Part shown: one piece after another, positions 7,832 through 24,198 of the stretch
Layout of the letters: each line of letters opens with the position of its first letter
Position numbering within the stretch: position 1 is the stretch's first letter
IMG/VR virus record: IMGVR_UViG_3300031857_000002
Coordinates: 124,001 to 188,000 of that record
Length of the DNA stretch: 64,000 nt
Direction: 5' to 3' (one strand)
Made by a program: the position numbers and the translations under genes
Notes under the pieces: generated by a model
What the model saw: the letters and a program-made list of their open reading frames with translations, nothing else
What the model was told of the DNA's origin: nothing
Databases searched by the model: none

Positions 7832-8422
7832 TTACATAGCAGGTCCGTTACCATTTTTAAACCCTACTGAACCGCCTTCTGCTTCAATACGTTTGATAAC
7901 GTCTTCAAACAAGATAGGTGCGAAGTCAGTTTGTTCCACACATACGCAATGGTAGCGAGGATCAATTACGGGGATACCATACTTACCCACGGGTTCCATC
8001 TTTACACGACTGGCATGCAAATGACCATGAATGTTAACGCCAAACCGTCCCAATGATTCGGGATGTATCGGAATATGACTCAAGATCATTCCGTTCATCA
8101 CATGGTATGCTCTCAACTCACGAAAGTACTCGCGGTATTCAACATCGGGAAAGATATCGTGGTTGCCACGGATCAACACTTTGTCGCCGTTCAATCGATG
8201 CAATGTTTTCAAAGCCTTGCGGTTGATAACAACATCGCCCAAATGGTACACCTTGTCGCTAGGACGCACACGGTCGTTCCAACGTCGAATCATTTCTTCG
8301 TCCATCTCATCGGCATTGTCCCAAGGACGCAATTTAACGTCAGGGTCATCCGGGTGCGTGAAGCGACAGACACCGGCGTGTCCAAAGTGTGTGTCACTGA
8401 CCAAAAATACTGCTGGCATCAT
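7832..8422 (-). CDS. calcineurin-like metallophosphoesterase
   Basis: SDTHFGH, HLGD, GNHD, SH and HGHLH motifs. Confidence 0.9.
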   Translation of the reverse strand: MMPAVFLVSDTHFGHAGVCRFTHPDDPDVKLRPWDNADEMDEEMIRRWNDRVRPSDKVYHLGDVVINRKALKTLHRLNGDKVLIRGNHDIFPDVEYREYFRELRAYHVMNGMILSHIPIHPESLGRFGVNIHGHLHASRVKMEPVGKYGIPVIDPRYHCVCVEQTDFAPILFEDVIKRIEAEGGSVGFKNGNGPAM

Positions 8423-12697: not shown

Positions 12698-12772
12698 TGG
12701 CCGGTCCGGAGAGATTCGAACTCCCGACAGCTGGTTTCGAAGACCAGAACTCTTCCACTGAGCTACGGACCG
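12698..12772 (-). tRNA. tRNA-Arg(TCG)
   Basis: Cloverleaf, loop CT-TCG-AA, encoded CCA. Confidence 0.9.
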
Positions 12773-12783
12773 TTAAATAGTTT

Positions 12784-13962
12784 ATGCTTAAATCTAAAAC
12801 TTCTTGTGTGATGCCTTACATGGGTCTAGCAATTCAAAATGACGGAGACTTTTGTGCTTGTAATAGAAACAATTGGAGTTATACCAATCGACAACAAGAA
12901 GTTTTGTTTGCCAATAAAAACACACTAGAAGAAGCATGGGCAAGCCCCACTAGAAAAATGTTGGCTGCTGGATTGGATTATGGAAAATCAATACCAAGTT
13001 GCAGTCCATGCACTAACTTAGAAGCCAGTGGCAAAATCAGTGCAAGACAAACGTTCAATAACCAATTTGGTCATCTTGCTCCGTTGCCTACTCAACCACG
13101 TGTGTTGATCATGAAACCAGGCAATGTTTGTAATCTGTCCTGTAGGATGTGCAATCCAGCAACCAGCACCACATGGTATCAGGATGGGTATAAATTAGCA
13201 AAGGCACATGACAATTTTGTTGGCACTCAAAAAGAATACACTGCACAATTTGAAACTATACGTTCGGCATTCAATCAAGAAAATCCCATATGGGATACCA
13301 TGGAACAGTGGCTGCCCAGTTTGGAATTTTTTGACATCTACGGAGGAGAACCATTCCTAGCTCCTGGTTTGTTTAAAGCCCTAACAGCAGTGGCCAAAGC
13401 AGACAAAAGTTCAACAGTGAGCTTGCAATTGCATACCAATGGTACGATATGGAATCCTGATTACTTGAATACATTGTCCAAGTACAAACACGTAAGAATA
13501 GGCATCAGCATTGACAGTGATGTAACCAGTCAGCTTGAGTACATTCGTTATCCACTGGAAGCTGACGTTGTTTGGCAAAATCTCAGCAGGTACAAAGACT
13601 GGGCAAGCAATCATTCCAACATAGAACTTTATATTTGTGTTACCCTTACGCCTCTTAATATATTTTACTTTGATTCAATTGACAAAAATTTAAGCAGGCA
13701 TTCATTACCAGTTGGCCACAATATTGTTTATAGCCCAACCGAATACGATGTGCGACACATACCAGTATCAGTGAGAAAAATTATTGCTGAGAAATTAAAA
13801 CATTATCCCACCCTGGCAAACTTTTTAATGCAGACCATACCAGGATGCGATGTTGCTTGGCCTAAGTTTTGGAAAATTACAAAAGAATTAGACAACATAC
13901 GCAATCAATCATTTGAATCAACGTTTCCTGAGTTTTATGAATTGATCAAGATGTATGTATGA
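12784..13962 (+). CDS. radical SAM protein with N-terminal SPASM/twitch-like Cys motif
   Basis: CNLSCRMC, GGEP, HTNGT, SID; preceded by TAAATA. Confidence 0.85.
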   Translation: MLKSKTSCVMPYMGLAIQNDGDFCACNRNNWSYTNRQQEVLFANKNTLEEAWASPTRKMLAAGLDYGKSIPSCSPCTNLEASGKISARQTFNNQFGHLAPLPTQPRVLIMKPGNVCNLSCRMCNPATSTTWYQDGYKLAKAHDNFVGTQKEYTAQFETIRSAFNQENPIWDTMEQWLPSLEFFDIYGGEPFLAPGLFKALTAVAKADKSSTVSLQLHTNGTIWNPDYLNTLSKYKHVRIGISIDSDVTSQLEYIRYPLEADVVWQNLSRYKDWASNHSNIELYICVTLTPLNIFYFDSIDKNLSRHSLPVGHNIVYSPTEYDVRHIPVSVRKIIAEKLKHYPTLANFLMQTIPGCDVAWPKFWKITKELDNIRNQSFESTFPEFYELIKMYV

Positions 13963-13963
13963 T

Positions 13964-14039
<76 letters not shown>

Positions 14040-14043
14040 AATT

Positions 14044-14118
14044 TGGAGCAGGATATCGGGTTCGAACCGATGACATTTTCGTTGGCAACGAAACATTCTA
14101 CCACTGAATTAATCCTGC
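14044..14118 (-). tRNA. tRNA-Gly(GCC)
   Basis: Cloverleaf, U73 + CCA. Confidence 0.92.
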
Positions 14119-14130
14119 AATCCGTTACTA

Positions 14131-14601
14131 TTAGGCAGCTCGAAGACTTTTAAATCTATCTGCCGCGTATGATGCCGCAAATGCTTCAGGCTTCACAAAT
14201 GGTACTACATTGCATACACCTTTGATGTAGCCAATAGCCTGGCTAATAACACAGCTTGAGCCGTACATTTCGTCAGGGTTGATGTCCAAATGAACTTCAA
14301 CATTGCGTCCTTCAAGTACTTCTGCTAATTTTAAATACAGCTCAGCTACTTTGTAGACTTCGGTCATCAGACGCATGGCAGGCTTGGATTCTTTTTGGTC
14401 GTACACACGTTCACGGTGCACCTCGCCAAATAGTTTACAGCCGTTGTTGCCATTGATGTGTACTACAACCGCTAACACATAGTCCGCATGCCACACACCG
14501 TCAATTCTGATTCTTTCACTGTCACACCCGAGATAAATTTTGGTCTCTGGAGTCTGATCCTTGATAAATTTTGATACCTCTGCCAGATTTAGTTTTTTCA
14601 T
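14131..14601 (-). CDS. RNase H-like YkuK-family protein
   Basis: IYLGCDS, RLMTEV, EVHLDIN, KPEAFAASYAAD. Confidence 0.75.
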   Translation of the reverse strand: MKKLNLAEVSKFIKDQTPETKIYLGCDSERIRIDGVWHADYVLAVVVHINGNNGCKLFGEVHRERVYDQKESKPAMRLMTEVYKVAELYLKLAEVLEGRNVEVHLDINPDEMYGSSCVISQAIGYIKGVCNVVPFVKPEAFAASYAADRFKSLRAA

Positions 14602-14605
14602 GATA

Positions 14606-15772
14606 CTATTTTTGTTTAGTGGATTGATACACCTGATTGATTTCTTCTAAACTAAGTGATTGCCAATTGAGATGTAAAATATCTGTGTTAGCAGGACTTG
14701 ATACATTCAATTGGTATCCGTGCTGATGAATAATTTCATCTTGTATATCCTTGGGTAATGTATAAAAATTGTTTTCATCAGATATCATGGGCCATGATGG
14801 ATCTTTGATTTTGGTATAAAACTCTGTCCAATTCGACTGTTGAACGTGTATATTACTATTCTTAAAGATTCTTGTCAGAACATGTGCTTCTATCCCACAA
14901 TGACTGGTAAGGTAAGAATCTAACACTCCAGTGGCCTCCCACTTGTTTATAGATTCAAACCACTGGAGATTGGATTGCGAGTTGATATAATTATCTTGAT
15001 AATTTGTTACATGGTCGCAGTTGTATGCATCACTTACCCCGCTGTTATTCATAAAATTTTCTAGCCACTGTGGAAAATAATTGGATGCAATGTCGGCACA
15101 TGAAATATCAAAAACTCTATTGTCTAACGCAAAATTGGTAACATAAGTTGACTCATTTACTTCGTGTGGCTGTAGTCTATTTCTTGTTTGATACCAGTTC
15201 ACTCCTCTTTGAATCTCGTTTTTCAATTCGTTGTAATCAGGTTTCTCCATGTGTTCAAAGAAGGCAGAATGATGTTTAACAATAAAATTTCTGTAGGCTT
15301 TACTTGATTCATGGAAACTAAAATCTTCTTCCCGTGGATCTGTGGGCAATAGTTGAAGTTTTGCATCACCGTATGAAGGCCACTTAGTAACACAATTAAT
15401 AGTGCCATAGGCGTCAACGTCAACGTCAGAATTGTTATGAACAATAACAAATACTCCAGTTGGATCCGATTGCATTATGATCCTAACTGATTGATACACG
15501 GTCGGAGTACCTTCATTGATAATGTATATTTTTTTATCTGTTGGTCGGTTGTAGATAACCCATGACAAGTGCCACAAAATACCCTGATGCGTAGGAACTC
15601 TCACATGCTTGTGTGAGGTGCCAGCACCTCCGAATTGAGCACTAGTTGATGTATTAATTGGTGACTTTACAGTGGTGTTGTAAAGATCGTTGTCACTGAT
15701 GTGAATAGCCCAATTGAGATAACTTCCGCTGTATCCAGCTGGATACAGTATGTATATGTTTTTTGTAAGCAT
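14606..15772 (-). CDS. hypothetical protein, possibly P-loop/sulfotransferase-like
   Basis: N-terminal YPAGYSGSYL loop; AT-rich accessory gene. Confidence 0.45.
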   Translation of the reverse strand: MLTKNIYILYPAGYSGSYLNWAIHISDNDLYNTTVKSPINTSTSAQFGGAGTSHKHVRVPTHQGILWHLSWVIYNRPTDKKIYIINEGTPTVYQSVRIIMQSDPTGVFVIVHNNSDVDVDAYGTINCVTKWPSYGDAKLQLLPTDPREEDFSFHESSKAYRNFIVKHHSAFFEHMEKPDYNELKNEIQRGVNWYQTRNRLQPHEVNESTYVTNFALDNRVFDISCADIASNYFPQWLENFMNNSGVSDAYNCDHVTNYQDNYINSQSNLQWFESINKWEATGVLDSYLTSHCGIEAHVLTRIFKNSNIHVQQSNWTEFYTKIKDPSWPMISDENNFYTLPKDIQDEIIHQHGYQLNVSSPANTDILHLNWQSLSLEEINQVYQSTKQK

Positions 15773-15811
15773 TAATTAATGATGCAATGATGTTGCACCA
15801 CTCAAAAATAA

Positions 15812-16084
15812 TTATTCAGGCGGTGCGTCTGTTATTGAGGTTGATACAATGTTACAATTATAAATTTCTGCCTGTGCCGTGACGAAGGAAATAAACTCTT
15901 CGGCGGCAGCTAAATCTCTCCAGTATCTTTTGGTAGTAACTTCGTCAACCGCTTCCCAGCGACCATTAGTTTTTCCATCAGTTTGCATCTCTTCAAGTTT
16001 TGGTGCGCGAACTTCGGTCAGTCGTGTTTCATTCTGGTGGTCTGCAGATCCCCAGATAATTGTAGTAATTTTAGTCATTGACAT
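15812..16084 (-). CDS. hypothetical protein
   Basis: AAGGA RBS and TATAAATA upstream. Confidence 0.6.
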   Translation of the reverse strand: MSMTKITTIIWGSADHQNETRLTEVRAPKLEEMQTDGKTNGRWEAVDEVTTKRYWRDLAAAEEFISFVTAQAEIYNCNIVSTSITDAPPE

Positions 16085-16158
16085 AATAGCGTTTCCTTTG
16101 TGCTTATTTATAGGCAAGCAGTAACATCTCCAAGAGATTATCTAACATACAATATGAA

Positions 16159-16330
16159 TTTGCAAACAAACCGGTTTCGCTAGGGCGGGAATTTGTACAC
16201 CAATCGTTAATAGATTAGCTCTACACCGGCAACAATCAAGGACCTCTCATCCTGACAACTGGTCCGACAGATACGCATCACTGCGCAGAGCCATCGGGGT
16301 TTACCCCTAAACGTTTTTTTTGTTTGCAAA
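16159..16330 (-). ncRNA. unassigned structured RNA, copy 1 (paralog of 20219..20376)
   Basis: 12-bp terminal inverted repeat TTTGCAAACAAA; internal hairpins; shared motifs AGGTCC, TGCC, AGAGCTA, ACAAAT. Confidence 0.65.
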
Positions 16331-16333
16331 ACT

Positions 16334-16418
16334 TGGTGCCCTAGGTCGGACTCGAACCGACACATATTTCTACGCCAGAACCTAAATCTGGTGCGTCTAC
16401 CAATTTCGCCACCAGGGC
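16334..16418 (-). tRNA. tRNA-Leu(TAG)
   Basis: Cloverleaf with long variable arm, encoded CCA. Confidence 0.92.
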
Positions 16419-16592
16419 TTATACTTCTACAACTTCTTGTAAACTGTCTTTGCGCATGAGAACTTTTCTTTCTTCTCCTACGCGGCGAACACTTAGGTAC
16501 TCAATCCCATCTAGTCGACGTACCATTCGTATGTTGTCACAGATGTAACGTTCAAGTGTGATTTTGTTTTCAAAAGTTTTAGTTTTTGTCAT
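16419..16592 (-). CDS. 57-aa hypothetical protein (MTKTKTFENKITLERYICDN...), not in the ORF track
   Basis: AGGAG RBS; translated by hand. Confidence 0.6.
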   Translation of the reverse strand: MTKTKTFENKITLERYICDNIRMVRRLDGIEYLSVRRVGEERKVLMRKDSLQEVVEV

Positions 16593-16622
16593 AGTGGTCT
16601 CCTATTAGATGTTGTACTTATC

Positions 16623-16714
16623 TGGCGGAAGACGGAGGAGTCGAACCCCATCCCATTTCTGAGAACCTGGTTTTCAAGGCCAGTCGCGGCACCAACGCCA
16701 CTGCATCATCTTCC
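16623..16714 (-). tRNA. tRNA-Ser(TGA)
   Basis: Long variable arm, G73 + CCA. Confidence 0.88.
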
Positions 16715-16721
16715 AAAAAGG

Positions 16722-16798
16722 TGGTCGGAATAGTAGGATTCGAACCTACGACCTCCTGGTCCCAAACCAGGCGCACTACCAGGCTGTGCTACACTCCG
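16722..16798 (-). tRNA. tRNA-Pro(TGG)
   Basis: Cloverleaf, encoded CCA. Confidence 0.92.
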
Positions 16799-16804
16799 AA
16801 TGTG

Positions 16805-16879
16805 TGGTACCTGGACACGGTTTCGAACCGCGGACCCTCTCCGTGTAAAGGAGACGCTCTACCCCTGAGCTATCCAGGC
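16805..16879 (-). tRNA. tRNA-Val(TAC)
   Basis: Cloverleaf, encoded CCA. Confidence 0.92.
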
Positions 16880-16887
16880 AAATTGTG

Positions 16888-16961
16888 TGGAGCGGAGTAG
16901 GGGAATCGAACCCCTCGCTTTAGCTTGGAAGGCTAAGGTATTACCACTATACGAACTCCGC
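16888..16961 (-). tRNA. tRNA-Gly(TCC)
   Basis: Cloverleaf, encoded CCA. Confidence 0.92.
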
Positions 16962-17010
16962 GTGTTGATACTTATAATAGTGTAACATGTACACTATAAA
17001 TAGTCAATCT

Positions 17011-18171
17011 ATGAACTTCCCAACCAACTACTGTGCATTGCCGTTTAGAGGCATGCAACTCGAATGTGATGGTGAGATTAAATCTTGCTGTCTGTACAAA
17101 CCACATCTTGATCAATCAATTACTCAATATCATATGACCAATTATGATCACTGGTGGAACAAATCTCTTGACCGAATACAAAATCATGTGATCAACAACA
17201 CCGTTGATCCTGGCTGCTCTTATTGTCTAGAGCCAACTATTCTTCCGCATCCTATGCGAACAGGCGCCAATGACTTTTTCAAACATGATCCACAATACAC
17301 ACCAGGTGACTCGCCTGAGTGGTTGGACATACGATTTGGCAACTTCTGCAATCTCAAATGTATGATGTGTACTCCTCTAAATAGTAGTCAAATTGAACTG
17401 GAATACAAAAACAATACCGCAGCCTACAATGCACAAGGAATTGCACACAGCAGTGGATGGAAACGATTCAGCATCGAAGACCAAGCGGCCAGCAAAGAAA
17501 ACTGGTGGGACAATTCTGAAACGTTTGCCAAGGTAGTCCAAATAGTAAATCGTGCTAGATATGTGAACTTCTCAGGAGGTGAACCTCTAATGATGCCACA
17601 ATTGTATGATCTCATGGATGCTATGAATCCCAACTGCATCATTACATTCAATACCAACTTGACCAGACTCACTGATCGCACTATGCAAGCATTGAAAAAA
17701 TTTAAAGATGTTAACTTGCAAGTCAGTTTAGACGGTGTTGGCGCACATCAAGAGTGGATACGTTGGAACAGCAACTGGCCTGAACTTGATCGCAACATTC
17801 AAACAGTTTGTAACACACCTAACATTAGAGTTACATTTAGTTATTTGTTACAACACACCACAATCTACACATGGCCAGCACTTTGGAAATATCTTGAACC
17901 ATTGAACTGTCAAATACTTGCAATGCCAGTGTACGCAGACACTATTGGCAAAGGTGTGTTAACACAACATTCGGCTGTGTCTACGGATGTTGAACGGTTT
18001 GTAGATTGGATCAAAGCCAACCCCAGTTCATGCAATCAAGAAATTGAACACTGGATTAGCAGTTATCAATTTGATCCTGTACTACACAAACAGTTTAGGG
18101 ACTATGTTGGTATGCTTGACAACATACGTGGTGGCAATTTCCGTGCCACGTTTGATCCTGCTTGGGACTAA
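17011..18171 (+). CDS. radical SAM protein with N-terminal SPASM/twitch-like Cys motif
   Basis: CALPF..DGEIKSCC; CNLKCMMC; SGGEP; TATAAATA just upstream. Confidence 0.85.
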   Translation: MNFPTNYCALPFRGMQLECDGEIKSCCLYKPHLDQSITQYHMTNYDHWWNKSLDRIQNHVINNTVDPGCSYCLEPTILPHPMRTGANDFFKHDPQYTPGDSPEWLDIRFGNFCNLKCMMCTPLNSSQIELEYKNNTAAYNAQGIAHSSGWKRFSIEDQAASKENWWDNSETFAKVVQIVNRARYVNFSGGEPLMMPQLYDLMDAMNPNCIITFNTNLTRLTDRTMQALKKFKDVNLQVSLDGVGAHQEWIRWNSNWPELDRNIQTVCNTPNIRVTFSYLLQHTTIYTWPALWKYLEPLNCQILAMPVYADTIGKGVLTQHSAVSTDVERFVDWIKANPSSCNQEIEHWISSYQFDPVLHKQFRDYVGMLDNIRGGNFRATFDPAWD

Positions 18172-18524
18172 TCCCAATACATTTCATTGTGGCACTGGTA
18201 GTAATACTCACGCTCTAAGGCAATCATGTCCTCATAGTCAACTCTGTAGTTGAACATGGGATTGCCCCCAATGGAAATTCTAACATAACTTGCCGGCGCC
18301 CACTCGGGACCTGGCGTTTGTTTTTTGTACTGGATGAACCAGGCATTGTTGTTGTGCTGGAACGAATGGCCTCGTTGGTTACGCCAGTTTGCCACAATGT
18401 CCGCAAACACTGCCTGAGGCAAACTCCATGTGTGTGCATGTGCATCACTCACACGTATGCTCAAGTCTATTGACTCGCGATCCTTGAACACATATAATTT
18501 TAATGGTTTGGTAAATTCTAACAT
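18168..18524 (-). CDS. hypothetical protein
   Basis: ORF between tRNA-Gln and the radical SAM gene. Confidence 0.55.
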   Translation of the reverse strand: MLEFTKPLKLYVFKDRESIDLSIRVSDAHAHTWSLPQAVFADIVANWRNQRGHSFQHNNNAWFIQYKKQTPGPEWAPASYVRISIGGNPMFNYRVDYEDMIALEREYYYQCHNEMYWD

Positions 18525-18538
18525 ACACTACTTATTGG

Positions 18539-18615
18539 TGGCAGGAGATATAGGATTCGAACCTATGCGTGTCGGAATCAAAATCCGATGCCTTGACCAA
18601 CTTGGCGAATCTCCA
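18539..18615 (-). tRNA. tRNA-Gln(TTG)
   Basis: Cloverleaf, unpaired 1:72, encoded CCA. Confidence 0.9.
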
Positions 18616-18626
18616 GTAAAACTACA

Positions 18627-18701
18627 TGGTGGATGAGAGTAGAGTCGAACTACTACTTGACTCCGTATGAAGGAGGCGCACTACCATTATGCTACTCATC
18701 C
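18627..18701 (-). tRNA. tRNA-Met(CAT), probably elongator
   Basis: G1-C72 paired, loop TT-CAT-AC, encoded CCA. Confidence 0.8.
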
Positions 18702-18778
18702 TGGGGTGCATGATGGGGGTCGAACCCACGCATATCGGAATCACAATCCGAGGTCTTAACCACTTGACGACACGCACC
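18702..18778 (-). tRNA. tRNA-His(GTG)
   Basis: Encoded G-1 and C73, encoded CCA. Confidence 0.92.
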
Positions 18779-18894
18779 ATATAGGAGCACTCTCAACAGC
18801 AGGCCTAGAAGGCAATCTGGTTGCTGAAACTTTTGCATCTGCAGATACTAGGTTTCTTCTTCCGCTTTGACTTACGCCAAGAATGCTTTTATAT
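18779..18894 (-). ncRNA. unassigned stem-capped RNA between tRNA-Lys and tRNA-His
   Basis: Terminal stem AUAUAAAAGCAUUCU / AGAGUGCUCCUAUAU fills the entire spacer. Confidence 0.5.
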
Positions 18895-18967
18895 GGTAGG
18901 GGTGTTCGGGAACGATCCGAATTTTACTGGTTAAAAGCCAGTTACTTCACCTTAAAGTTTCACCCCC
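18894..18967 (-). tRNA. tRNA-Lys(TTT) with atypical T-loop
   Basis: Anticodon arm ACTGG-CTTTTAA-CCAGT; T-loop ATCGTTC; encoded CCA. Confidence 0.85.
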
Positions 18968-19017
18968 GTAGGTTTGGGTATCTTATCACTGTCCATCGGG
19001 ACTCTCCTTTAAAAATC

Positions 19018-19091
19018 TGGTAGCCTGTAGAGGTTACGATCCTCTGTCGCTCGATTATCAGTCGAGTGCTCTTCCATTGAGCTAACGGGCT
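19018..19091 (-). tRNA. tRNA-Ile(GAT)
   Basis: Cloverleaf; T-loop ATCGTAA; encoded CCA. Confidence 0.85.
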
Positions 19092-19095
19092 GTAT

Positions 19096-19170
19096 TGGTA
19101 CCGCCATATGGAATCGAACCACAATTTCCAGGTTCGTAGCCTGGAGTATTATCCATTATACTATAGCGAT
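19096..19170 (-). tRNA. tRNA-Arg(ACG)
   Basis: Cloverleaf, encoded CCA. Confidence 0.9.
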
Positions 19171-19175
19171 GTTGT

Positions 19176-19250
19176 TGGTGCCGACTATCGGATTCGAACT
19201 GATGACCTATCGCTTACAAGGCGATTGCACTACCACTGTGCTAAGTCGGC
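19176..19250 (-). tRNA. tRNA-Thr(TGT)
   Basis: Cloverleaf, encoded CCA. Confidence 0.92.
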
Positions 19251-19254
19251 TAAT

Positions 19255-19330
19255 TGGCTCCCCAACGTGGGCTCGAACCACGGACCAACAGATTAACAGT
19301 CTGCTACTCTACCGACTGAGCTATTGGGGA
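19255..19330 (-). tRNA. tRNA-Asn(GTT)
   Basis: Cloverleaf, encoded CCA. Confidence 0.92.
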
Positions 19331-19340
19331 ATGATTGATA

Positions 19341-19430
19341 TGGCCGAGAGCCTGGGAGTCGAACCCAGTGACCGTATTACTACGGTCTACGGATTAGCAA
19401 TCCGCTGCATTACCGTCCTGCCCGCTCTCG
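19341..19430 (-). tRNA. tRNA-Ser(GCT)
   Basis: Long variable arm, encoded CCA. Confidence 0.9.
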
Positions 19431-19470
19431 ACAATCTACTTAGTAGGCACTCAAGCCTTCTACAAAAATC

Positions 19471-19545
19471 TGGTGGACCGTCCCGGGATCGAACCGGGGA
19501 CTGAAGCTTGCAAAGCTACTGTGTTCCCATCTATACCAACAGCCC
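19471..19545 (-). tRNA. tRNA-Ala(TGC)
   Basis: G3:U70 pair, encoded CCA. Confidence 0.92.
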
Positions 19546-19550
19546 ATGTG

Positions 19551-19624
19551 TGGCGTACCTCCAAGGACTCGAACCTTGACTGACGGTTTTGGAGACCGCG
19601 GTGCTGCCATTACACCAGAGATAC
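19551..19624 (-). tRNA. tRNA-Trp(CCA)
   Basis: Loop CT-CCA-AA, encoded CCA end. Confidence 0.9.
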
Positions 19625-19794
19625 CTAACACACTCTTTGGAATGTGTGTATTAAAGCACTCTAAAATACTTAGGCTGCCTGTTCTTAAAGAATGCTTTAA
19701 TACGCTGTAATTTTTTGTTCTACAAGAAGAACTCTATCCTACAGGCCGCCCATTTGCAGTTTTGAGTGATGCAGGCTCTCGTTGCCATTGCACT

Positions 19795-19829
19795 AAAAGA
19801 AAAACCCTAGAGTGTTTAGTTCCAGGGTC
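19795..19829 (-). terminator. intrinsic terminator of the putative attenuator
   Basis: Stem GACCCUGGA / UCUAGGGUU followed by UUUCUUUU. Confidence 0.8.
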
Positions 19830-19853
19830 CTTTGGGTAGAATACTAATGTACT

Positions 19854-19970
19854 TTACACGGACCCCGGGTCTCCTGGAATGCTATTCACGCGACCGTTCG
19901 CATGCGTCCAGGCCGATGGCTGGATAAACATGGATGTCTTTGACAGTGAATAGAATTTTGTTTTCATCAT
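19854..19970 (-). CDS. putative 38-aa attenuator leader peptide MMKTKFYSLSKTSMFIQPSAWTHANGRVNSIPGDPGSV
   Basis: ATG lies 6 nt after the -10 hexamer (leaderless); last codons form the antiterminator arm. Confidence 0.7.
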   Translation of the reverse strand: MMKTKFYSLSKTSMFIQPSAWTHANGRVNSIPGDPGSV

Positions 19971-19976
19971 GTACCT

Positions 19977-20005
19977 ATTATAGTTTATTTATGGTTGACA
20001 GTCAA
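19977..20005 (-). promoter_or_regulatory. sigma70 promoter of the leader/tRNA operon
   Basis: TTGACT-N17-TATAAT; palindrome GGTTGAC-N-GTCAACC overlaps the -35. Confidence 0.8.
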
Positions 20006-20042
20006 CCTGTTTTTGAACTTTTATTTATCAAGTTCACCAAAT

Positions 20043-20118
20043 TGGTTGCGGGAGGAGGAATCGAACCTTCCATCTGTGAGCTTATGAGACTCACGTGCGA
20101 CCACTACACTTTCCCGCG
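20043..20118 (-). tRNA. initiator tRNA-fMet(CAT)
   Basis: C1:A72 mismatch, 5' CGCGGG, ends AACCA. Confidence 0.85.
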
Positions 20119-20137
20119 GTAATACTTATACAAAAAT

Positions 20138-20215
20138 TGGAACACAGGGTGAGATTTGAACTCACGACTTTACGGATTTGCAATCCGTTGCATTTGACCG
20201 CTCTGCCACCTGTGC
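20138..20215 (-). tRNA. tRNA-Cys(GCA)
   Basis: U73 + CCA. Confidence 0.9.
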
Positions 20216-20218
20216 ATA

Positions 20219-20376
20219 TTTTTATAGTCAAGCACCGAGAGATGCCGATTTGTCAACAAAGTAGCTAGCTCTGACAAGCGAATGGCAGTTATGTCAGGAC
20301 CTGTTCCTCGCACAGTTAGGCCCGAATAGTGACAGCGTCCCGTCACGATACCTTTATCGATGCTTGACTATAAAAA
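20219..20376 (-). ncRNA. unassigned structured RNA, copy 2 (paralog of 16159..16330)
   Basis: Perfect 16-bp terminal inverted repeat TTTTTATAGTCAAGCA; internal hairpins; shared motifs with copy 1. Confidence 0.7.
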
Positions 20377-20459
20377 CATATTGAAACACACTAACTACCT
20401 TGGTATGTACTCAAGTTCATTGAACCGCTACGACCCTATCTTTAATGTGCTTCAATATG
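20377..20459 (-). ncRNA. unassigned stem-capped RNA
   Basis: Terminal stem CATATTGAAGCACA / TGTGTTTCAATATG. Confidence 0.5.
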
Positions 20460-20658
20460 CTCTGCATCCCCCGGCGGTAATTGTAGTACAGAAAGATACG
20501 ACGCTATCGTACCCATCACACGTACCTTCCACCCGCTTCCCGACAGGGACCGTTCTCGCATTGCTAGCGGCCTTTAGGTTCGAAGACTACCACCCGTAGT
20601 TGTCACACTACTTCTCATCCTGTGGGTCACAGTATCCAGAGACTAATCTGGAACGTTC
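20460..20658 (-). ncRNA. unassigned GC-rich structured RNA directly 3' of tRNA-Tyr
   Basis: No credible ORF; hairpins such as TCCAGA/TCTGGA, CTGTG/CACAG, GTAGT/ACTAC, TACGA/TCGTA. Confidence 0.55.
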
Positions 20659-20743
20659 TGGTGGAGATGATAGGGATCGAACCTATCGTGACCGAAGTCG
20701 GAGGAGTTACAGTCCCCTGCCACACCATTGCGGCGGCATCTCC
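20659..20743 (-). tRNA. tRNA-Tyr(GTA)
   Basis: Long variable arm, encoded CCA. Confidence 0.9.
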
Positions 20744-20748
20744 ATGTG

Positions 20749-20823
20749 TGGTACTCGATAGCGGAGTCGAACCGCTCTTGCCTGGATGAAAACCAGATGT
20801 CCTAACCGATAGACGAATCGAGC
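20749..20823 (-). tRNA. tRNA-Glu(TTC)
   Basis: Cloverleaf, encoded CCA. Confidence 0.9.
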
Positions 20824-20831
20824 AAATAAGG

Positions 20832-20896
20832 GAGAGCCACGGTTGCAGGACCTAGTGCTTCGTTACCGAAGGAAGTGTCCAGGCGATGTGACTCTC
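20832..20896 (-). ncRNA. unassigned 65-nt structured RNA
   Basis: Stems GAGAGTCAC/GTGGCTCTC, CCTGG/CTAGG and CTTCG-GTAA-CGAAG (GNRA loop). Confidence 0.55.
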
Positions 20897-20902
20897 AAAA
20901 CT

Positions 20903-20977
20903 TGGCGGTCTGTGGGGGAATCGAACCCCCGTAAGTGGATAGACAATCCACAGTAATAACCTCTATACGAACAGACC
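20903..20977 (-). tRNA. tRNA-Asp(GTC)
   Basis: Cloverleaf, G73 + CCA. Confidence 0.9.
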
Positions 20978-20985
20978 AAAATCTA

Positions 20986-21200
20986 CTATATTAAAAAATA
21001 CTAAAGGAACCATTGTGCATCTATGTCTACCTATAGGACCGTCTCCTATAGACCTGCACGGTCATTACTGCCTACATGCTCCGCCGCTTTTCTGGACATT
21101 TCTGCCCGGTTTCATAGACCTAGCTTGAGCGTGGGCGGCCCCACTGTCCTCGCCTTAGATCCCTAACGGTGTAGGTAACCTTTAATACATTTTAATATAG
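20986..21200 (-). ncRNA. unassigned ~215-nt structured RNA, first element after the tandem promoters
   Basis: ~20-bp AU-rich terminal stem (CTATATTAAAA...TAAAGG / CCTTTA...TTTTAATATAG) enclosing a GC-rich multi-hairpin core. Confidence 0.6.
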
Positions 21201-21233
21201 CAACCCTTGCGGGCTACTACAAGCAAACTTAAC

Positions 21234-21266
21234 TTTTTAAAGAACATCTAGTTAATTTCTAACTAG
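21234..21266 (-). promoter_or_regulatory. boxB-like hairpin plus boxA antitermination signal
   Basis: CTAGTTA-GAAAT-TAACTAG hairpin followed by TGTTCTTTAAAAA (rrn boxA: TGCTCTTTAACA). Confidence 0.65.
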
Positions 21267-21271
21267 TCTCT

Positions 21272-21300
21272 AGTATAACACAATAGCTATATCTAGTCAA
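21272..21300 (-). promoter_or_regulatory. tRNA/ncRNA operon promoter P2
   Basis: TTGACT-N17-TATACT. Confidence 0.75.
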
Positions 21301-21368
21301 CTTGTTTTTGCAAGTCCCTTCATTTTGGAAGGATTCTGCTAAGAACACTTGTTTCTTAACTTGTTTCT

Positions 21369-21397
21369 ATTGTAGCAAATTGCAAATATTGCGTCAA
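21369..21397 (-). promoter_or_regulatory. tRNA/ncRNA operon promoter P1
   Basis: TTGACG-N17-TACAAT. Confidence 0.7.
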
Positions 21398-21405
21398 CCA
21401 CCAAT

Positions 21406-21431
21406 AAAAAACCCGCTTAGTGCGGGTTTTT
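21406..21431. terminator. intrinsic terminator
   Basis: AAAAAACCCGC-TTAGT-GCGGGTTTTT. Confidence 0.85.
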
Positions 21432-21457
21432 ATAAATGTAATACTTTTGTTTACATT

Positions 21458-22357
21458 TTATGCAACGAACGGAGTATACTCAATTCCTGTTGTTGCTAAC
21501 CCTACTAATCCAATTGTGGTTTCAAACGCTGCCAACTCACTTGCGGCTACTAACACATCTGCTTGGCTCAAATTGCTACTGGTCATCCAAGCTGTGTAGT
21601 CAGTGACTTGTGTCAATGTAGCATCTGTACCAAATACGTTTTTGTAAACGTGCTTGATGAATGTTTCATTGCTGACACCACCTGCATCAGTTTTGTAAGC
21701 ATCGGTGGCCAACAATGCTGTGGCTAGTTCTTTGTTTGTCCACCCTGCATCGGCAAGATAGATACCAATGCCTTTGTATGCGTTGGTTACGTCTGTGGTA
21801 CCCAATGCGGCTGCCAACAATGCGTAAACATCACCAGCACGACCTGCGGCATCATAGGCAATGGCCTTGTCTGTGAATACCACACGCTCGTGGTCAGCAA
21901 GATTGAATTCCATGTTGCTGACCAATGTGCTGGCTAAGGTAACTTTAGCGGCAGTTTTGGTTGTGGTGAATTCTGTGCTGGCACCACCCATGGTGTAGGT
22001 GTCAACGCCTGTGGTGCCTGTAACATCCACAACGACATCAACTGTGCCATCACCTGCACGACCTGTGCCCACTACACCAAAGGTGGCAACTTTACCTAGT
22101 GTGCCAACAGTAGCCACTGTAACGATCAAGTTGTTGGCTACTGTACCACCCAATGCTGTTCCAGCAAGAGTGATAGTGTCTCCTGCCACATAGCCGCGAC
22201 CTGCACTTGCGGCAAGACTATCTAATACAACGGAATAAACACCGTTGGTCTTTGTAACATCAAATGCGGCTTCAACACCTGCACCGCCCGTTAACCCTGT
22301 AACGTTTTGGTATGTGGCATTGACTGCTTTGTCTTTGATTGTGATTGTTGTTGTCAT
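21458..22357 (-). CDS. Thr/Ala/Gly-rich S-layer-like protein with C-terminal DUF4214-like domain
   Basis: ERVVFTDKAIAYD, VSNETFIKHVYKNVFG; strongly biased composition. Confidence 0.65.
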   Translation of the reverse strand: MTTTITIKDKAVNATYQNVTGLTGGAGVEAAFDVTKTNGVYSVVLDSLAASAGRGYVAGDTITLAGTALGGTVANNLIVTVATVGTLGKVATFGVVGTGRAGDGTVDVVVDVTGTTGVDTYTMGGASTEFTTTKTAAKVTLASTLVSNMEFNLADHERVVFTDKAIAYDAAGRAGDVYALLAAALGTTDVTNAYKGIGIYLADAGWTNKELATALLATDAYKTDAGGVSNETFIKHVYKNVFGTDATLTQVTDYTAWMTSSNLSQADVLVAASELAAFETTIGLVGLATTGIEYTPFVA

Positions 22358-22485
22358 AATTTTCCTTTAAAATAAAAATGATCTATAAACTTAATTAGTG
22401 GTTTATACTAGTAGTATACATGAATTTTCTAACAAAACTTGTGCGTGTGCGCACATGATTGGTACGAAAGTTTGAAATTATTGCC

Positions 22486-22512
22486 AAAAGAAAACCCGCC
22501 GGAGCGGGTTTT
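22486..22512. terminator. intrinsic terminator ending the tmRNA coding piece
   Basis: AAAACCCGC-CGGA-GCGGGTTTT. Confidence 0.85.
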
Positions 22513-22694
22513 GGTGGTTTCTGTTACGAGGTATTTCCTACCCTAGGCTGCGTTTAGGCTGCCAAAGCGAACTGTTCGTCGTTTGCATTTACGGTTTTTG
22601 TGTCTTCGACCAGGTTACCCCAATCCTAACGGCTTCTACCTTGCCGGACTGTCCATGTTGTTACTCTTGACCCAATCGATCCTGTGTCAGGCCC
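22495..22694 (-). ncRNA. ssrA: two-piece (permuted) tmRNA, coding piece; tag ANDEQFALAA* at 22554..22586
   Basis: 5' GGGCCTG acceptor strand, GGATCGA D-region, GTAAAT-GCA resume context, typical proteolysis tag. Confidence 0.9.
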
Positions 22695-22695
22695 A

Positions 22696-22905
22696 TCATA
22701 ACGATTTTCGTCCCCAATTAATAATGTTCCATACTCTTTCATGAATATAATACAATATTGTATTCACTATTAATTGTGTTATAGCAATAGGTCCTGCAAT
22801 TGATAAGTTACCTGAAATTAACAAGACTATGAGGAATGTTGCACCCGATCCTGTTAATCTCCAACTTATAGTTTTTACAATGCTTCTCAAATTGCTATCG
22901 TTCAT
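22696..22905 (-). CDS. DUF2061-like small membrane protein inside the tmRNA intervening segment
   Basis: RSIVKTISWR...YYIHERVW..I.WG; AAGGA RBS immediately after the tmRNA CCA. Confidence 0.8.
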   Translation of the reverse strand: MNDSNLRSIVKTISWRLTGSGATFLIVLLISGNLSIAGPIAITQLIVNTILYYIHERVWNIINWGRKSL

Positions 22906-22914
22906 AAATCCTTA

Positions 22915-22978
22915 TGGTGGACCTGGCGGGCACTGCCCCCGCGTCTTGAATCCTTTTCTCTCTACTTCATACAGTCTT
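22915..22978 (-). ncRNA. ssrA: two-piece tmRNA, acceptor piece
   Basis: T-arm GCGGG-GGCAGTG-CCCGC; CAGGTCC-A-CCA pairs with GGGCCTG giving G3:U70. Confidence 0.88.
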
Positions 22979-23156
22979 AAACTTGCTCCACTATCTGAAT
23001 ATCCAGTCTTAACGGCTGATCCCAGTTGACCCAGGGTATGGTGCCGGCTTCTCTGGCACTCTCAATATCATCCAATATTTCGGTGACATTGTAGCCAGGC
23101 CCAGGAATGTCTCGTTCCTGCCATAGTTGATTTTGCATTGAGATAGTGATTTTCAT
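22977..23156 (-). CDS. 59-aa hypothetical protein (MKITISMQNQLWQERD...), not in the ORF track
   Basis: Translated by hand; TAAATA upstream. Confidence 0.5.
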   Translation of the reverse strand: MKITISMQNQLWQERDIPGPGYNVTEILDDIESAREAGTIPWVNWDQPLRLDIQIVEQV

Positions 23157-23167
23157 AACGATATTTA

Positions 23168-23722
23168 TTAGTCAACATCAATATCATCGTCTAGCACAAC
23201 CCATCCCAATCGAAACAAATCTTCACGAATTTCATCAGTGATCACGCTTTCAGGCACATAATTTTTTTTAGCTAGAATCTCTGCCTCTATTTCTGGACTA
23301 GATTCACTACCTCCGCCAATTACACCGCCAATGCCTGAACAATACCAATCCATGTAATCACCTTGTACTCGCATGTCTGCAATGATACCGCCAGCATACC
23401 GCCAGCTACAACTCCAGGTTTGATTCTTAAGAGTGGCCCAGACTTCGTTTTTTTGAAAGGTACGATTGCACATGGCCGCATAGAGATTCTGCGAATAGGA
23501 CTTGCTAGAACGAACTTTGGCCAACATGAAATCAGAGGTACGAAGATCGTACTCCATGTTGTTTTGTTGCCATTCGGTATCTTGTTCTTTGGCCATCTTG
23601 TTAATATTTGCTTGTTCAAACATTTTGATGTAGGCTTTATTGAGTTTTTTGCCGTTTTCTGCACATCGTTTGATGTAGTTTTCTTTTTGGAAAGTATTAC
23701 GACTAGGACTACAACTGATCAT
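23168..23722 (-). CDS. hypothetical phage protein
   Basis: GGAG RBS; conserved-looking motifs QNLYAAMCN and SWRYAGG. Confidence 0.65.
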   Translation of the reverse strand: MISCSPSRNTFQKENYIKRCAENGKKLNKAYIKMFEQANINKMAKEQDTEWQQNNMEYDLRTSDFMLAKVRSSKSYSQNLYAAMCNRTFQKNEVWATLKNQTWSCSWRYAGGIIADMRVQGDYMDWYCSGIGGVIGGGSESSPEIEAEILAKKNYVPESVITDEIREDLFRLGWVVLDDDIDVD

Positions 23723-23735
23723 TGTTACTCCAAAA

Positions 23736-23819
23736 TGGTACGAGTAGCCGGAGTCGAACCGGCACGCATTAAGCGGCGGATTTTAAGTCCGCTGGGTCTA
23801 CCGATTCCCCCATACTCGT
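23736..23819 (-). tRNA. tRNA-Leu(TAA)
   Basis: Long variable arm, encoded CCA. Confidence 0.9.
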
Positions 23820-23826
23820 ATGTTGT

Positions 23827-23988
23827 TTATCCGCCTCGGCCAGTGACCTTTTTAACAGGTTTACCCACTGGTGCAGGTGCTGTTGTTTTTTTAACTGACT
23901 TGGAACCTTTGGTAGGTTTTGCATCAGGATGTTGCGCGGCATGTTTTTTCTCTAATGCCGATTTTACTGCTGTGATAAATGAAGCCAT
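23827..23988 (-). CDS. 53-aa Lys-rich basic protein (MASFITAVKSALEKK...KKVTGRGG), not in the ORF track
   Basis: AGGAG RBS; translated by hand. Confidence 0.6.
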   Translation of the reverse strand: MASFITAVKSALEKKHAAQHPDAKPTKGSKSVKKTTAPAPVGKPVKKVTGRGG

Positions 23989-23997
23989 AGTGTTCTC

Positions 23998-24198
23998 CTA
24001 GTACTTGTTATTTAACGCGGCCCAGGTCATCCAGGCACGAAAAGCATTATATACTGTGAGGGCTTCGTTTTCGTCTACAGGAACTTTGACACCACGAACA
24101 TAAAATCCATCTGCAGTGACTCGCAACATTTCATCATCGCTACCTGCATGAAGTATGATTTTGGGTTTGCTATCTGATTGATGTAGCGTGTATGTCAT
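23998..24198 (-). CDS. hypothetical protein
   Basis: AAGGA RBS after the tRNA-Arg CCA. Confidence 0.55.
   Translation of the reverse strand: MTYTLHQSDSKPKIILHAGSDDEMLRVTADGFYVRGVKVPVDENEALTVYNAFRAWMTWAALNNKY

Follow-up and report, generated by a model that had tools for sequence, protein, structure and literature searches.

A leader ORF sampling nearly all amino acids and its associated candidate attenuator in front of phage tRNA genes

The locus lies in a 320-kb uncultured phage record from IMG/VR (IMGVR_UViG_3300031857_000002), of which a stretch of 64,000 nucleotides, positions 124001-188000, was analyzed and is hereafter referred to as the window. The family-B DNA polymerase of this phage is closest to those of Sinorhizobium phage Phosso (51% identity) and Agrobacterium phage Atu_ph07 (47%), whereas the Rak2/121Q-like jumbo phages are more distant. 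All 26 tRNA genes of the genome and a permuted tmRNA gene lie on the minus strand between window positions 12698 and 24365. A 418-nt gap between tRNA-Met (20118-20043) and tRNA-Trp (19624-19551) within this region contains a promoter, a short ORF and two overlapping RNA hairpins, which are followed by a further structured RNA and the downstream part of the tRNA array:

19977-20005 (-), sigma-70-type promoter: -35 TTGACT (20005-20000), 17-nt spacer, -10 TATAAT (19982-19977)
19854-19970 (-), leader ORF of 38 codons plus TAA (19856-19854), probably leaderless
19908-19910 (-), the single Trp codon (UGG, codon 21), nearly invariant in the family
19860-19868 (-), arm 1, CCGGGGUCC, the 5' strand of the antiterminator, lying in codons 35-37
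19836-19857 (-), upper hairpin of the antiterminator, with the stop codon on its 5' side
19822-19830 (-), arm 2, GGACCCUGG, the shared strand that pairs with either arm 1 or arm 3
19795-19828 (-), intrinsic terminator: stem ACCCUGG / CUAGGGU (19828-19822 with 19810-19804), 11-nt loop, then UUUUUCUUUU (19804-19795)
19625-19798 (-), conserved structured RNA of unknown role between the terminator and the first tRNA
12698-19624 (-), tRNA array presumed to be under control: 18 tRNA genes from Trp (19624-19551) to Arg (12772-12698), serving 15 amino acids

The promoter scores 11 of 12 and is the best match in the surrounding 5.5 kb (18500-24000). The ATG at 19970 follows the -10 hexamer by 6 nt, so that the expected +1 is its A, although this inference rests on spacing only. 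Arm 1 pairs with arm 2 over 9 bp, including one G.U, and arm 2 shares ACCCUGG with the 5' arm of the terminator, so the two helices exclude each other. In folding models, the free RNA adopts the antiterminator, whereas the terminator forms when a ribosome footprint is placed on the stop codon. An initial strict scan of the genome for perfect three-arm sites found nothing, because the terminator of the window has a G.U pair, but a relaxed generic three-arm-plus-ORF detector found this site and no other in the whole 320-kb genome on both strands. No Rfam model matches at E<=1 between 19625 and 20042; a sub-threshold Trp_leader-like hit at 21403-21474 overlaps the 3' end of a neighboring 299-aa gene and its terminator, and no small ORF module is present there.

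A sequence-only reading of the locus had proposed that this ORF is a pan-codon leader peptide that gates the phage tRNAs, and the promoter, the 38-codon ORF, the 9-bp pairing and the overlapping terminator that it described are all confirmed. However, ARAGORN finds 18 tRNA genes downstream, not the 19 claimed in that reading; a sub-threshold tRNA-Sec-like match between tRNA-Pro and tRNA-Leu (16627-16714, minus strand; 36 bits, cut-off 47), which may be an odd or decayed tRNA, may be the additional gene. Moreover, the compositional diversity on which the reading relied is not beyond chance for this one ORF. The ORF has 30 distinct codons and 18 amino-acid types, but among 38-codon windows of long ORFs from the same genome, 5% have 30 or more codon types (P=0.05), 15% have 18 or more amino-acid types (P=0.15) and 2.4% contain all 15 amino acids served by the downstream tRNAs (P=0.024). 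Thus, the window copy alone is only suggestive, and the case for the central idea comes from comparative evidence.

Of 80 loci fetched through the neighboring 299-aa gene, only five hold the whole region, because most do not have the tRNA array beside that gene; in all five close relatives the frame is kept, although the 5' half of the ORF varies, and relatives have a perfect terminator stem CCAGGGU. More distant copies (loci L068, L086 and L087) keep the peptide core W[ST]HAxGRVNSIPGxxGS with synonymous changes and also show a C-G to U-A change between arm 1 and arm 2. A profile search detected called proteins of 37-43 residues from the same family in metagenomes, whereas Pfam and PHROGs yielded nothing for the peptides. 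Scans for the three-arm pattern then showed that the module is common: the window-type arms hit 62 viral contigs and the GGGGUCC / GGACCCCAGG / CCUGGGG type hit 106, which, together with the other loci, gave 158 distinct modules. In contrast, blastn of the window region and of two other modules against 50,697 GenBank phage records found tRNA matches only or nothing, indicating that DNA similarity does not reach the cultured relatives.

In all 154 modules with enough upstream sequence there is an ORF (median 46 codons, 5th-95th percentile 36-49) whose stop lies between arm 1 and arm 2, 18-35 nt before arm 2. The spacers on either side of arm 1 (6+17, 8+15 and 11+15 nt) vary together, which keeps the frame. 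Nevertheless, the three codon positions vary equally (0.52, 0.50, 0.51), and pN/pS is about 0.66 among close pairs and 0.8 overall, suggesting that selection acts on being translated rather than on a particular protein. A few relatives depart from this pattern: in four of the called proteins (P0005, P0006, P0011 and P0014) the reading frame has no stop before arm 2 and runs on through the terminator and the structured RNA (71-156 aa as called); these may be decayed copies or a different mode of control.

Both alternative helices covary. In a sample chosen only by a coding motif (AAYGATCGYACACCAGAR), 59 of 61 distinct sequences keep the three arms, the exceptions being one unrelated chance match and one natural deletion. 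The latter, in L278 (IMGVR_UViG_3300008110_005229, around 7871-7920), joins arm 1 directly to arm 3, removing arm 2 and the whole antiterminator; no terminator hairpin can form, so this copy should read through constitutively. The variant arms change together: locus L262 has GGAGUCU / AGACUCCAGG / CCUGGAGU, so that all three arms changed, L272 and L276 have GGGUUC / GAACCC, and others have GGACCCUAGG / CCUAGGG or GGACCCCUGG / CCAGGGG. Because the MAFFT alignment had register shifts in the arms, pairs were tabulated with an anchor-based script; position -1 of helix 1:2, which no search required to pair, is GC in 79 copies, AU in 52 and GU in 19. The upper part of the antiterminator also covaries, its sequence varying while the pairing is kept, although RNAalifold on full-length type-B sequences returned only the terminator and the antiterminator appeared only after arm 3 was cut off. 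Mean folding energy is -24.7 kcal/mol for the antiterminator and -13.7 for the terminator. The free RNA is predicted to form the antiterminator in 126 of 149 copies, and with a ribosome on the stop codon, arm 2 lies clear of the footprint and the terminator is the best fold of the RNA 3' of the ribosome in 149 of 149.

The same design is present at the head of a tRNA array in two cultured phages, Atu_ph07, which infects Agrobacterium tumefaciens C58, and Phosso, which infects Sinorhizobium meliloti, with unrelated arm sequences: CCGGUUCCG / CGGAACCGG(GUA) / UACCCGGUUUUUUU in Atu_ph07 and CCGGGUCGGU / ACUGACCCGGAUUAG / CUAAUCCGGGUUUU in Phosso. In both, the stop codon lies in the apical loop, each peptide has one Trp, and the ORFs are annotated as hypothetical proteins. 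The more distant relatives, E. coli phage 121Q and Vibrio phage 2.275.O, have no such module near their tRNAs.

The genomic context is strict. Of 91 modules with at least 1 kb of downstream sequence, 91 are followed by same-strand tRNA genes within 3 kb and 86 within 1 kb, with a median of 12 tRNAs per 3 kb. A promoter of the form TTGACN, 16-18 nt, TANNNT was found in 111 of 122 family members with at least 90 nt upstream; the -10 hexamer ends either 6-10 nt or about 25-60 nt before the ATG, and about half are leaderless-like and half have a 5' UTR. Between the terminator and the first tRNA lies the conserved structured RNA of about 170-210 nt, which recurs before the first tRNA of many related arrays; RNAalifold on 16 sequences gives 37 pairs, 26 with compensatory changes, and there is no Rfam match. 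In many type-B loci, an ORF of about 52 aa (MTEIDKKKQREAEF...) with its own ribosome-binding site is inserted between the terminator and the structured RNA (e.g., L015 12509-12665 and L056 5055-5210) and would be co-regulated with the tRNAs.

As a family, the leaders are pan-amino-acid. Of 152 distinct peptides, 102 contain all 20 amino acids, 24 contain 19 and 18 contain 18. The mean is 19.4, compared with 17.1 for random draws from the leaders' own pooled composition (sd of the mean 0.10) and 16.3 for 46-residue proteome windows, of which only 2.1% hold all 20 (P=0.021). Rare residues occur almost exactly once: W in 95% of peptides, H in 81%, Y in 74% and C in 72%. Within 71 type-B peptides, Cys is always present but sits in 20 different alignment columns, and all 56 peptides that lack it at the commonest column have it elsewhere; His (37 of 38), Tyr (40 of 41) and Phe (32 of 34) behave the same way, which indicates selection for presence, not position. 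Trp is different: 150 of 154 peptides have a W and 144 have exactly one, at codons 20-25, 42-57 nt before arm 1 (5th-95th percentiles), and in the 71 type-B peptides it occupies a single alignment column. Leaders also use more codon types than their peptides require (34.2 against 31.5) and use both codon boxes of Ser, Leu and Arg more often than expected. The part of the ORF far enough upstream for a stalled ribosome to leave arm 1 free (about 34 codons) holds 18.3 amino-acid types, against 15.5 expected; however, Glu, Asp and Val are often supplied only by the last codons, where a stalled ribosome would mask arm 1 rather than free it.

Furthermore, amino acids missing from a leader tend to be those without a tRNA gene downstream. 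In 41 modules with at least 4 kb downstream, an amino acid is present in the leader in 99.0% of cases where its tRNA lies downstream, against 90.1% where it does not (odds ratio 11, p=1e-7, not corrected for relatedness). The window-type leaders sit inside arrays and lack different subsets of C, D, E and Y, the amino acids whose tRNAs lie upstream and not downstream: the window lacks C and E, L101 lacks C and D, L106 lacks D and E, and L128 lacks E and Y. This supports the remark in the sequence-only reading that the tRNA genes for the two missing amino acids, C and E, lie upstream of the switch. There is, however, no match at the level of codon and anticodon: leader codons are no more readable by the tRNAs of the array than expected (414 observed, 396 expected, z=1.4). 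Throughout these comparisons the sequences are related, so that the simple statistics overstate the independent support.

Taken together, these observations are best explained by a ribosome-mediated transcription attenuator that gates the downstream part of the phage tRNA array, an interpretation that we consider probable although, in the absence of experimental evidence, the start site, termination, coupling to translation and natural trigger are inferred. Under this model, transcription starts at or near the AUG of the leader ORF, the end of which is the 5' strand of a long antiterminator hairpin with the stop codon near its top. If a ribosome follows the polymerase smoothly to the stop codon, it unzips or covers arm 1, arm 2 pairs with arm 3, and transcription ends about 55 nt past the stop. 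If no ribosome loads, or if it stalls earlier in the ORF, the more stable antiterminator forms and the polymerase reads into the structured RNA and the tRNA genes. The leaders carry about one codon for every amino acid, so a shortage of almost any charged tRNA could cause the stall, and the circuit would therefore supply phage tRNAs on demand and shut off once they relieve the stall. Several features fit this scheme less readily. The nearly invariant Trp codon and the subfamily motifs (GRVNSIPG, NDRTPE) are not explained by a pure "any codon" sensor, and no polymerase pause element that would synchronize ribosome and polymerase was found. Phosso has two promoter-like sites beginning TTGACG between its terminator and first tRNA (locus L293 2530-2640, Phosso 420030-420140), and part of the transcription of that array may bypass the switch. 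In addition, tRNA genes lie just upstream in the same direction, and read-through transcripts from upstream would carry an untranslated leader and would escape control. Metatranscriptome contigs show the region in RNA libraries but are uninformative with respect to ends and depth, and one RNA-library contig spans the terminator (19731-20068).

Among the alternatives, a nascent-peptide sensor, in which the conserved Trp and the following motif act inside the ribosome tunnel, as in TnaC or SecM, to stall the ribosome in response to one specific signal and set the same RNA switch, appears unlikely but is the strongest. It would be consistent with the single, nearly invariant Trp at a fixed distance from arm 1 and with the persistence of subfamily motifs such as W[ST]HAxGRVNSIPG and NDRTPE, with synonymous changes at H, A, S and P between the window and L068. 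However, the motifs differ between subfamilies and only W is shared, pN/pS is high, and the TnaC pattern W-x3-D-x7-P-stop is absent: in the window, W21 is followed by T, H, A and N, with no D at +4, and in the family the distance from W to the stop varies (17-22 residues). Neither the retention of all 20 amino acids at wandering positions nor the correspondence between missing residues and missing tRNAs is explained by this model.

Still less likely is an ordinary small-protein gene with its own promoter and terminator, whose peptide acts in trans while the arm 1-arm 2 pairing only shapes or stabilizes the 3' end of the mRNA. The ORF is indeed conserved, predicted by gene callers and annotated in GenBank as a hypothetical protein, but selection on the amino acid sequence is weak, no Pfam or PHROG family was found, and a pan-amino-acid composition with wandering residues fits no known folded or binding peptide. 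Moreover, apart from the deletion noted above, the antiterminator overlaps the terminator in every member and is much the more stable, so that such a gene would rarely terminate unless translated, and the position before tRNA arrays is strict. A non-coding RNA with an incidental reading frame, i.e., an sRNA or a protein-binding leader like lambda pR'-tR' or the put sites, with read-through set by a phage factor, is the most doubtful of the three. The strong promoter, short terminated transcript and downstream operon resemble lambda pR'-tR', and the 3' half is highly conserved at the nucleotide level among close relatives; on the other side stand the 154 of 154 open ORFs in diverse copies with frame-preserving changes in spacer length, the placement of the stop between arms 1 and 2, the non-random amino acid composition and the absence of an Rfam match.

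With respect to known systems, the leader-peptide attenuators of amino-acid operons (trpL, hisL, leuL, thrL, pheL and the multivalent ilvL of ilvGMEDA) likewise combine a short leader ORF, an intrinsic terminator and an overlapping antiterminator, with the position of the ribosome deciding which helix forms and stalling giving read-through (here by inference). Those leaders repeat codons for one to three amino acids and control biosynthetic enzymes, whereas the present leader has no such run, carries about one codon for each of the 20 amino acids and precedes tRNA genes in a phage; it also has three segments rather than four, with no 1:2 "protector" hairpin, so an untranslated leader should read through rather than super-attenuate. 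The leaderless polycysteine short ORFs that act as attenuators in mycobacteria (bioRxiv 10.1101/834739) are similarly placed at the 5' end of an operon and used as translation-dependent sensors, a role that is inferred here, but are rich in one amino acid (Cys), are cellular and control cysteine-related genes. The T-box riboswitch senses tRNA charging and chooses between an antiterminator and a terminator, but binds one specific tRNA directly, has no ORF and controls aminoacyl-tRNA synthetase and related genes; no Rfam T-box match is present here, and the element is coding. TnaC and SecM share with this element a short ORF with a conserved Trp whose translation state governs, or here is inferred to govern, downstream expression, but depend on a fixed peptide motif and, for TnaC, on Rho, whereas here the terminator is intrinsic. 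Lambda pR'-tR' (6S RNA) with Q antitermination also places a strong promoter and a short terminated transcript (here inferred) in front of a long phage operon, but has no conserved ORF or ribosome-dependent switch and is controlled by a protein. Full-text searches found no report of a leader peptide or attenuator before phage tRNA genes, or of a leader containing all amino acids; the mechanism class is classical, and the predicted all-amino-acid sensor and the tRNA target are what is new.

Why phages carry tRNA arrays, and how they use them against tRNA-cleaving host defenses, is an active question, and a conserved leader of this kind in front of the arrays implies that phage tRNAs are made on demand, which turns the "tRNA depletion" idea into a circuit that can be tested directly in the two cultured phages. 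It would also extend classical attenuation from sensing one amino acid to sensing all of them and offers a compact natural sensor of translation capacity. More speculatively, and with about even chances of being correct, phages of this clade might run a per-amino-acid feedback loop on their own tRNA supply, in which each leader is tuned to the set of tRNAs encoded by its array. Under this hypothesis, loss of any one charged tRNA, whether through host anticodon nucleases, host shut-off or starvation, would stall the leader ribosome and switch on the replacement tRNAs, and their arrival would shut the array off again. This would be the first attenuator that senses all amino acids and the first known regulated expression of viral tRNA genes.

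The surrounding tRNA region of the window contains additional features. The phage-encoded permuted (two-piece type) tmRNA gene (22463-23007, minus strand) has the tag peptide ANDEQFALAA, and two radical-SAM ORFs, one with a SPASM domain, lie on the opposite strand at 12784-13962 (+) and 16987-18171 (+), interrupting the array. Two further gaps of 440-480 nt in the array (20216-20658 and 20978-21457, both minus strand) hold no gene that we could name; the first has a weak permuted-tmRNA-like hit, and the second has two promoter-like sites (21397-21369 and 21300-21272) and a GC-rich, possibly structured stretch before tRNA-Asp. Outside the window, the best hit of the profile search, P0001 (501 aa), is a protein made of eight tandem repeats of about 63 aa, each resembling the leader peptide core. 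Finally, a scan of 185,579 species genomes gave five chance matches and one real member, a 6.2-kb, 42% GC contig (JBBAKF010000113.1) binned with a Polynucleobacter genome (Polynucleobacter sp. MAG), which is a weak hint at the host group of the freshwater members.
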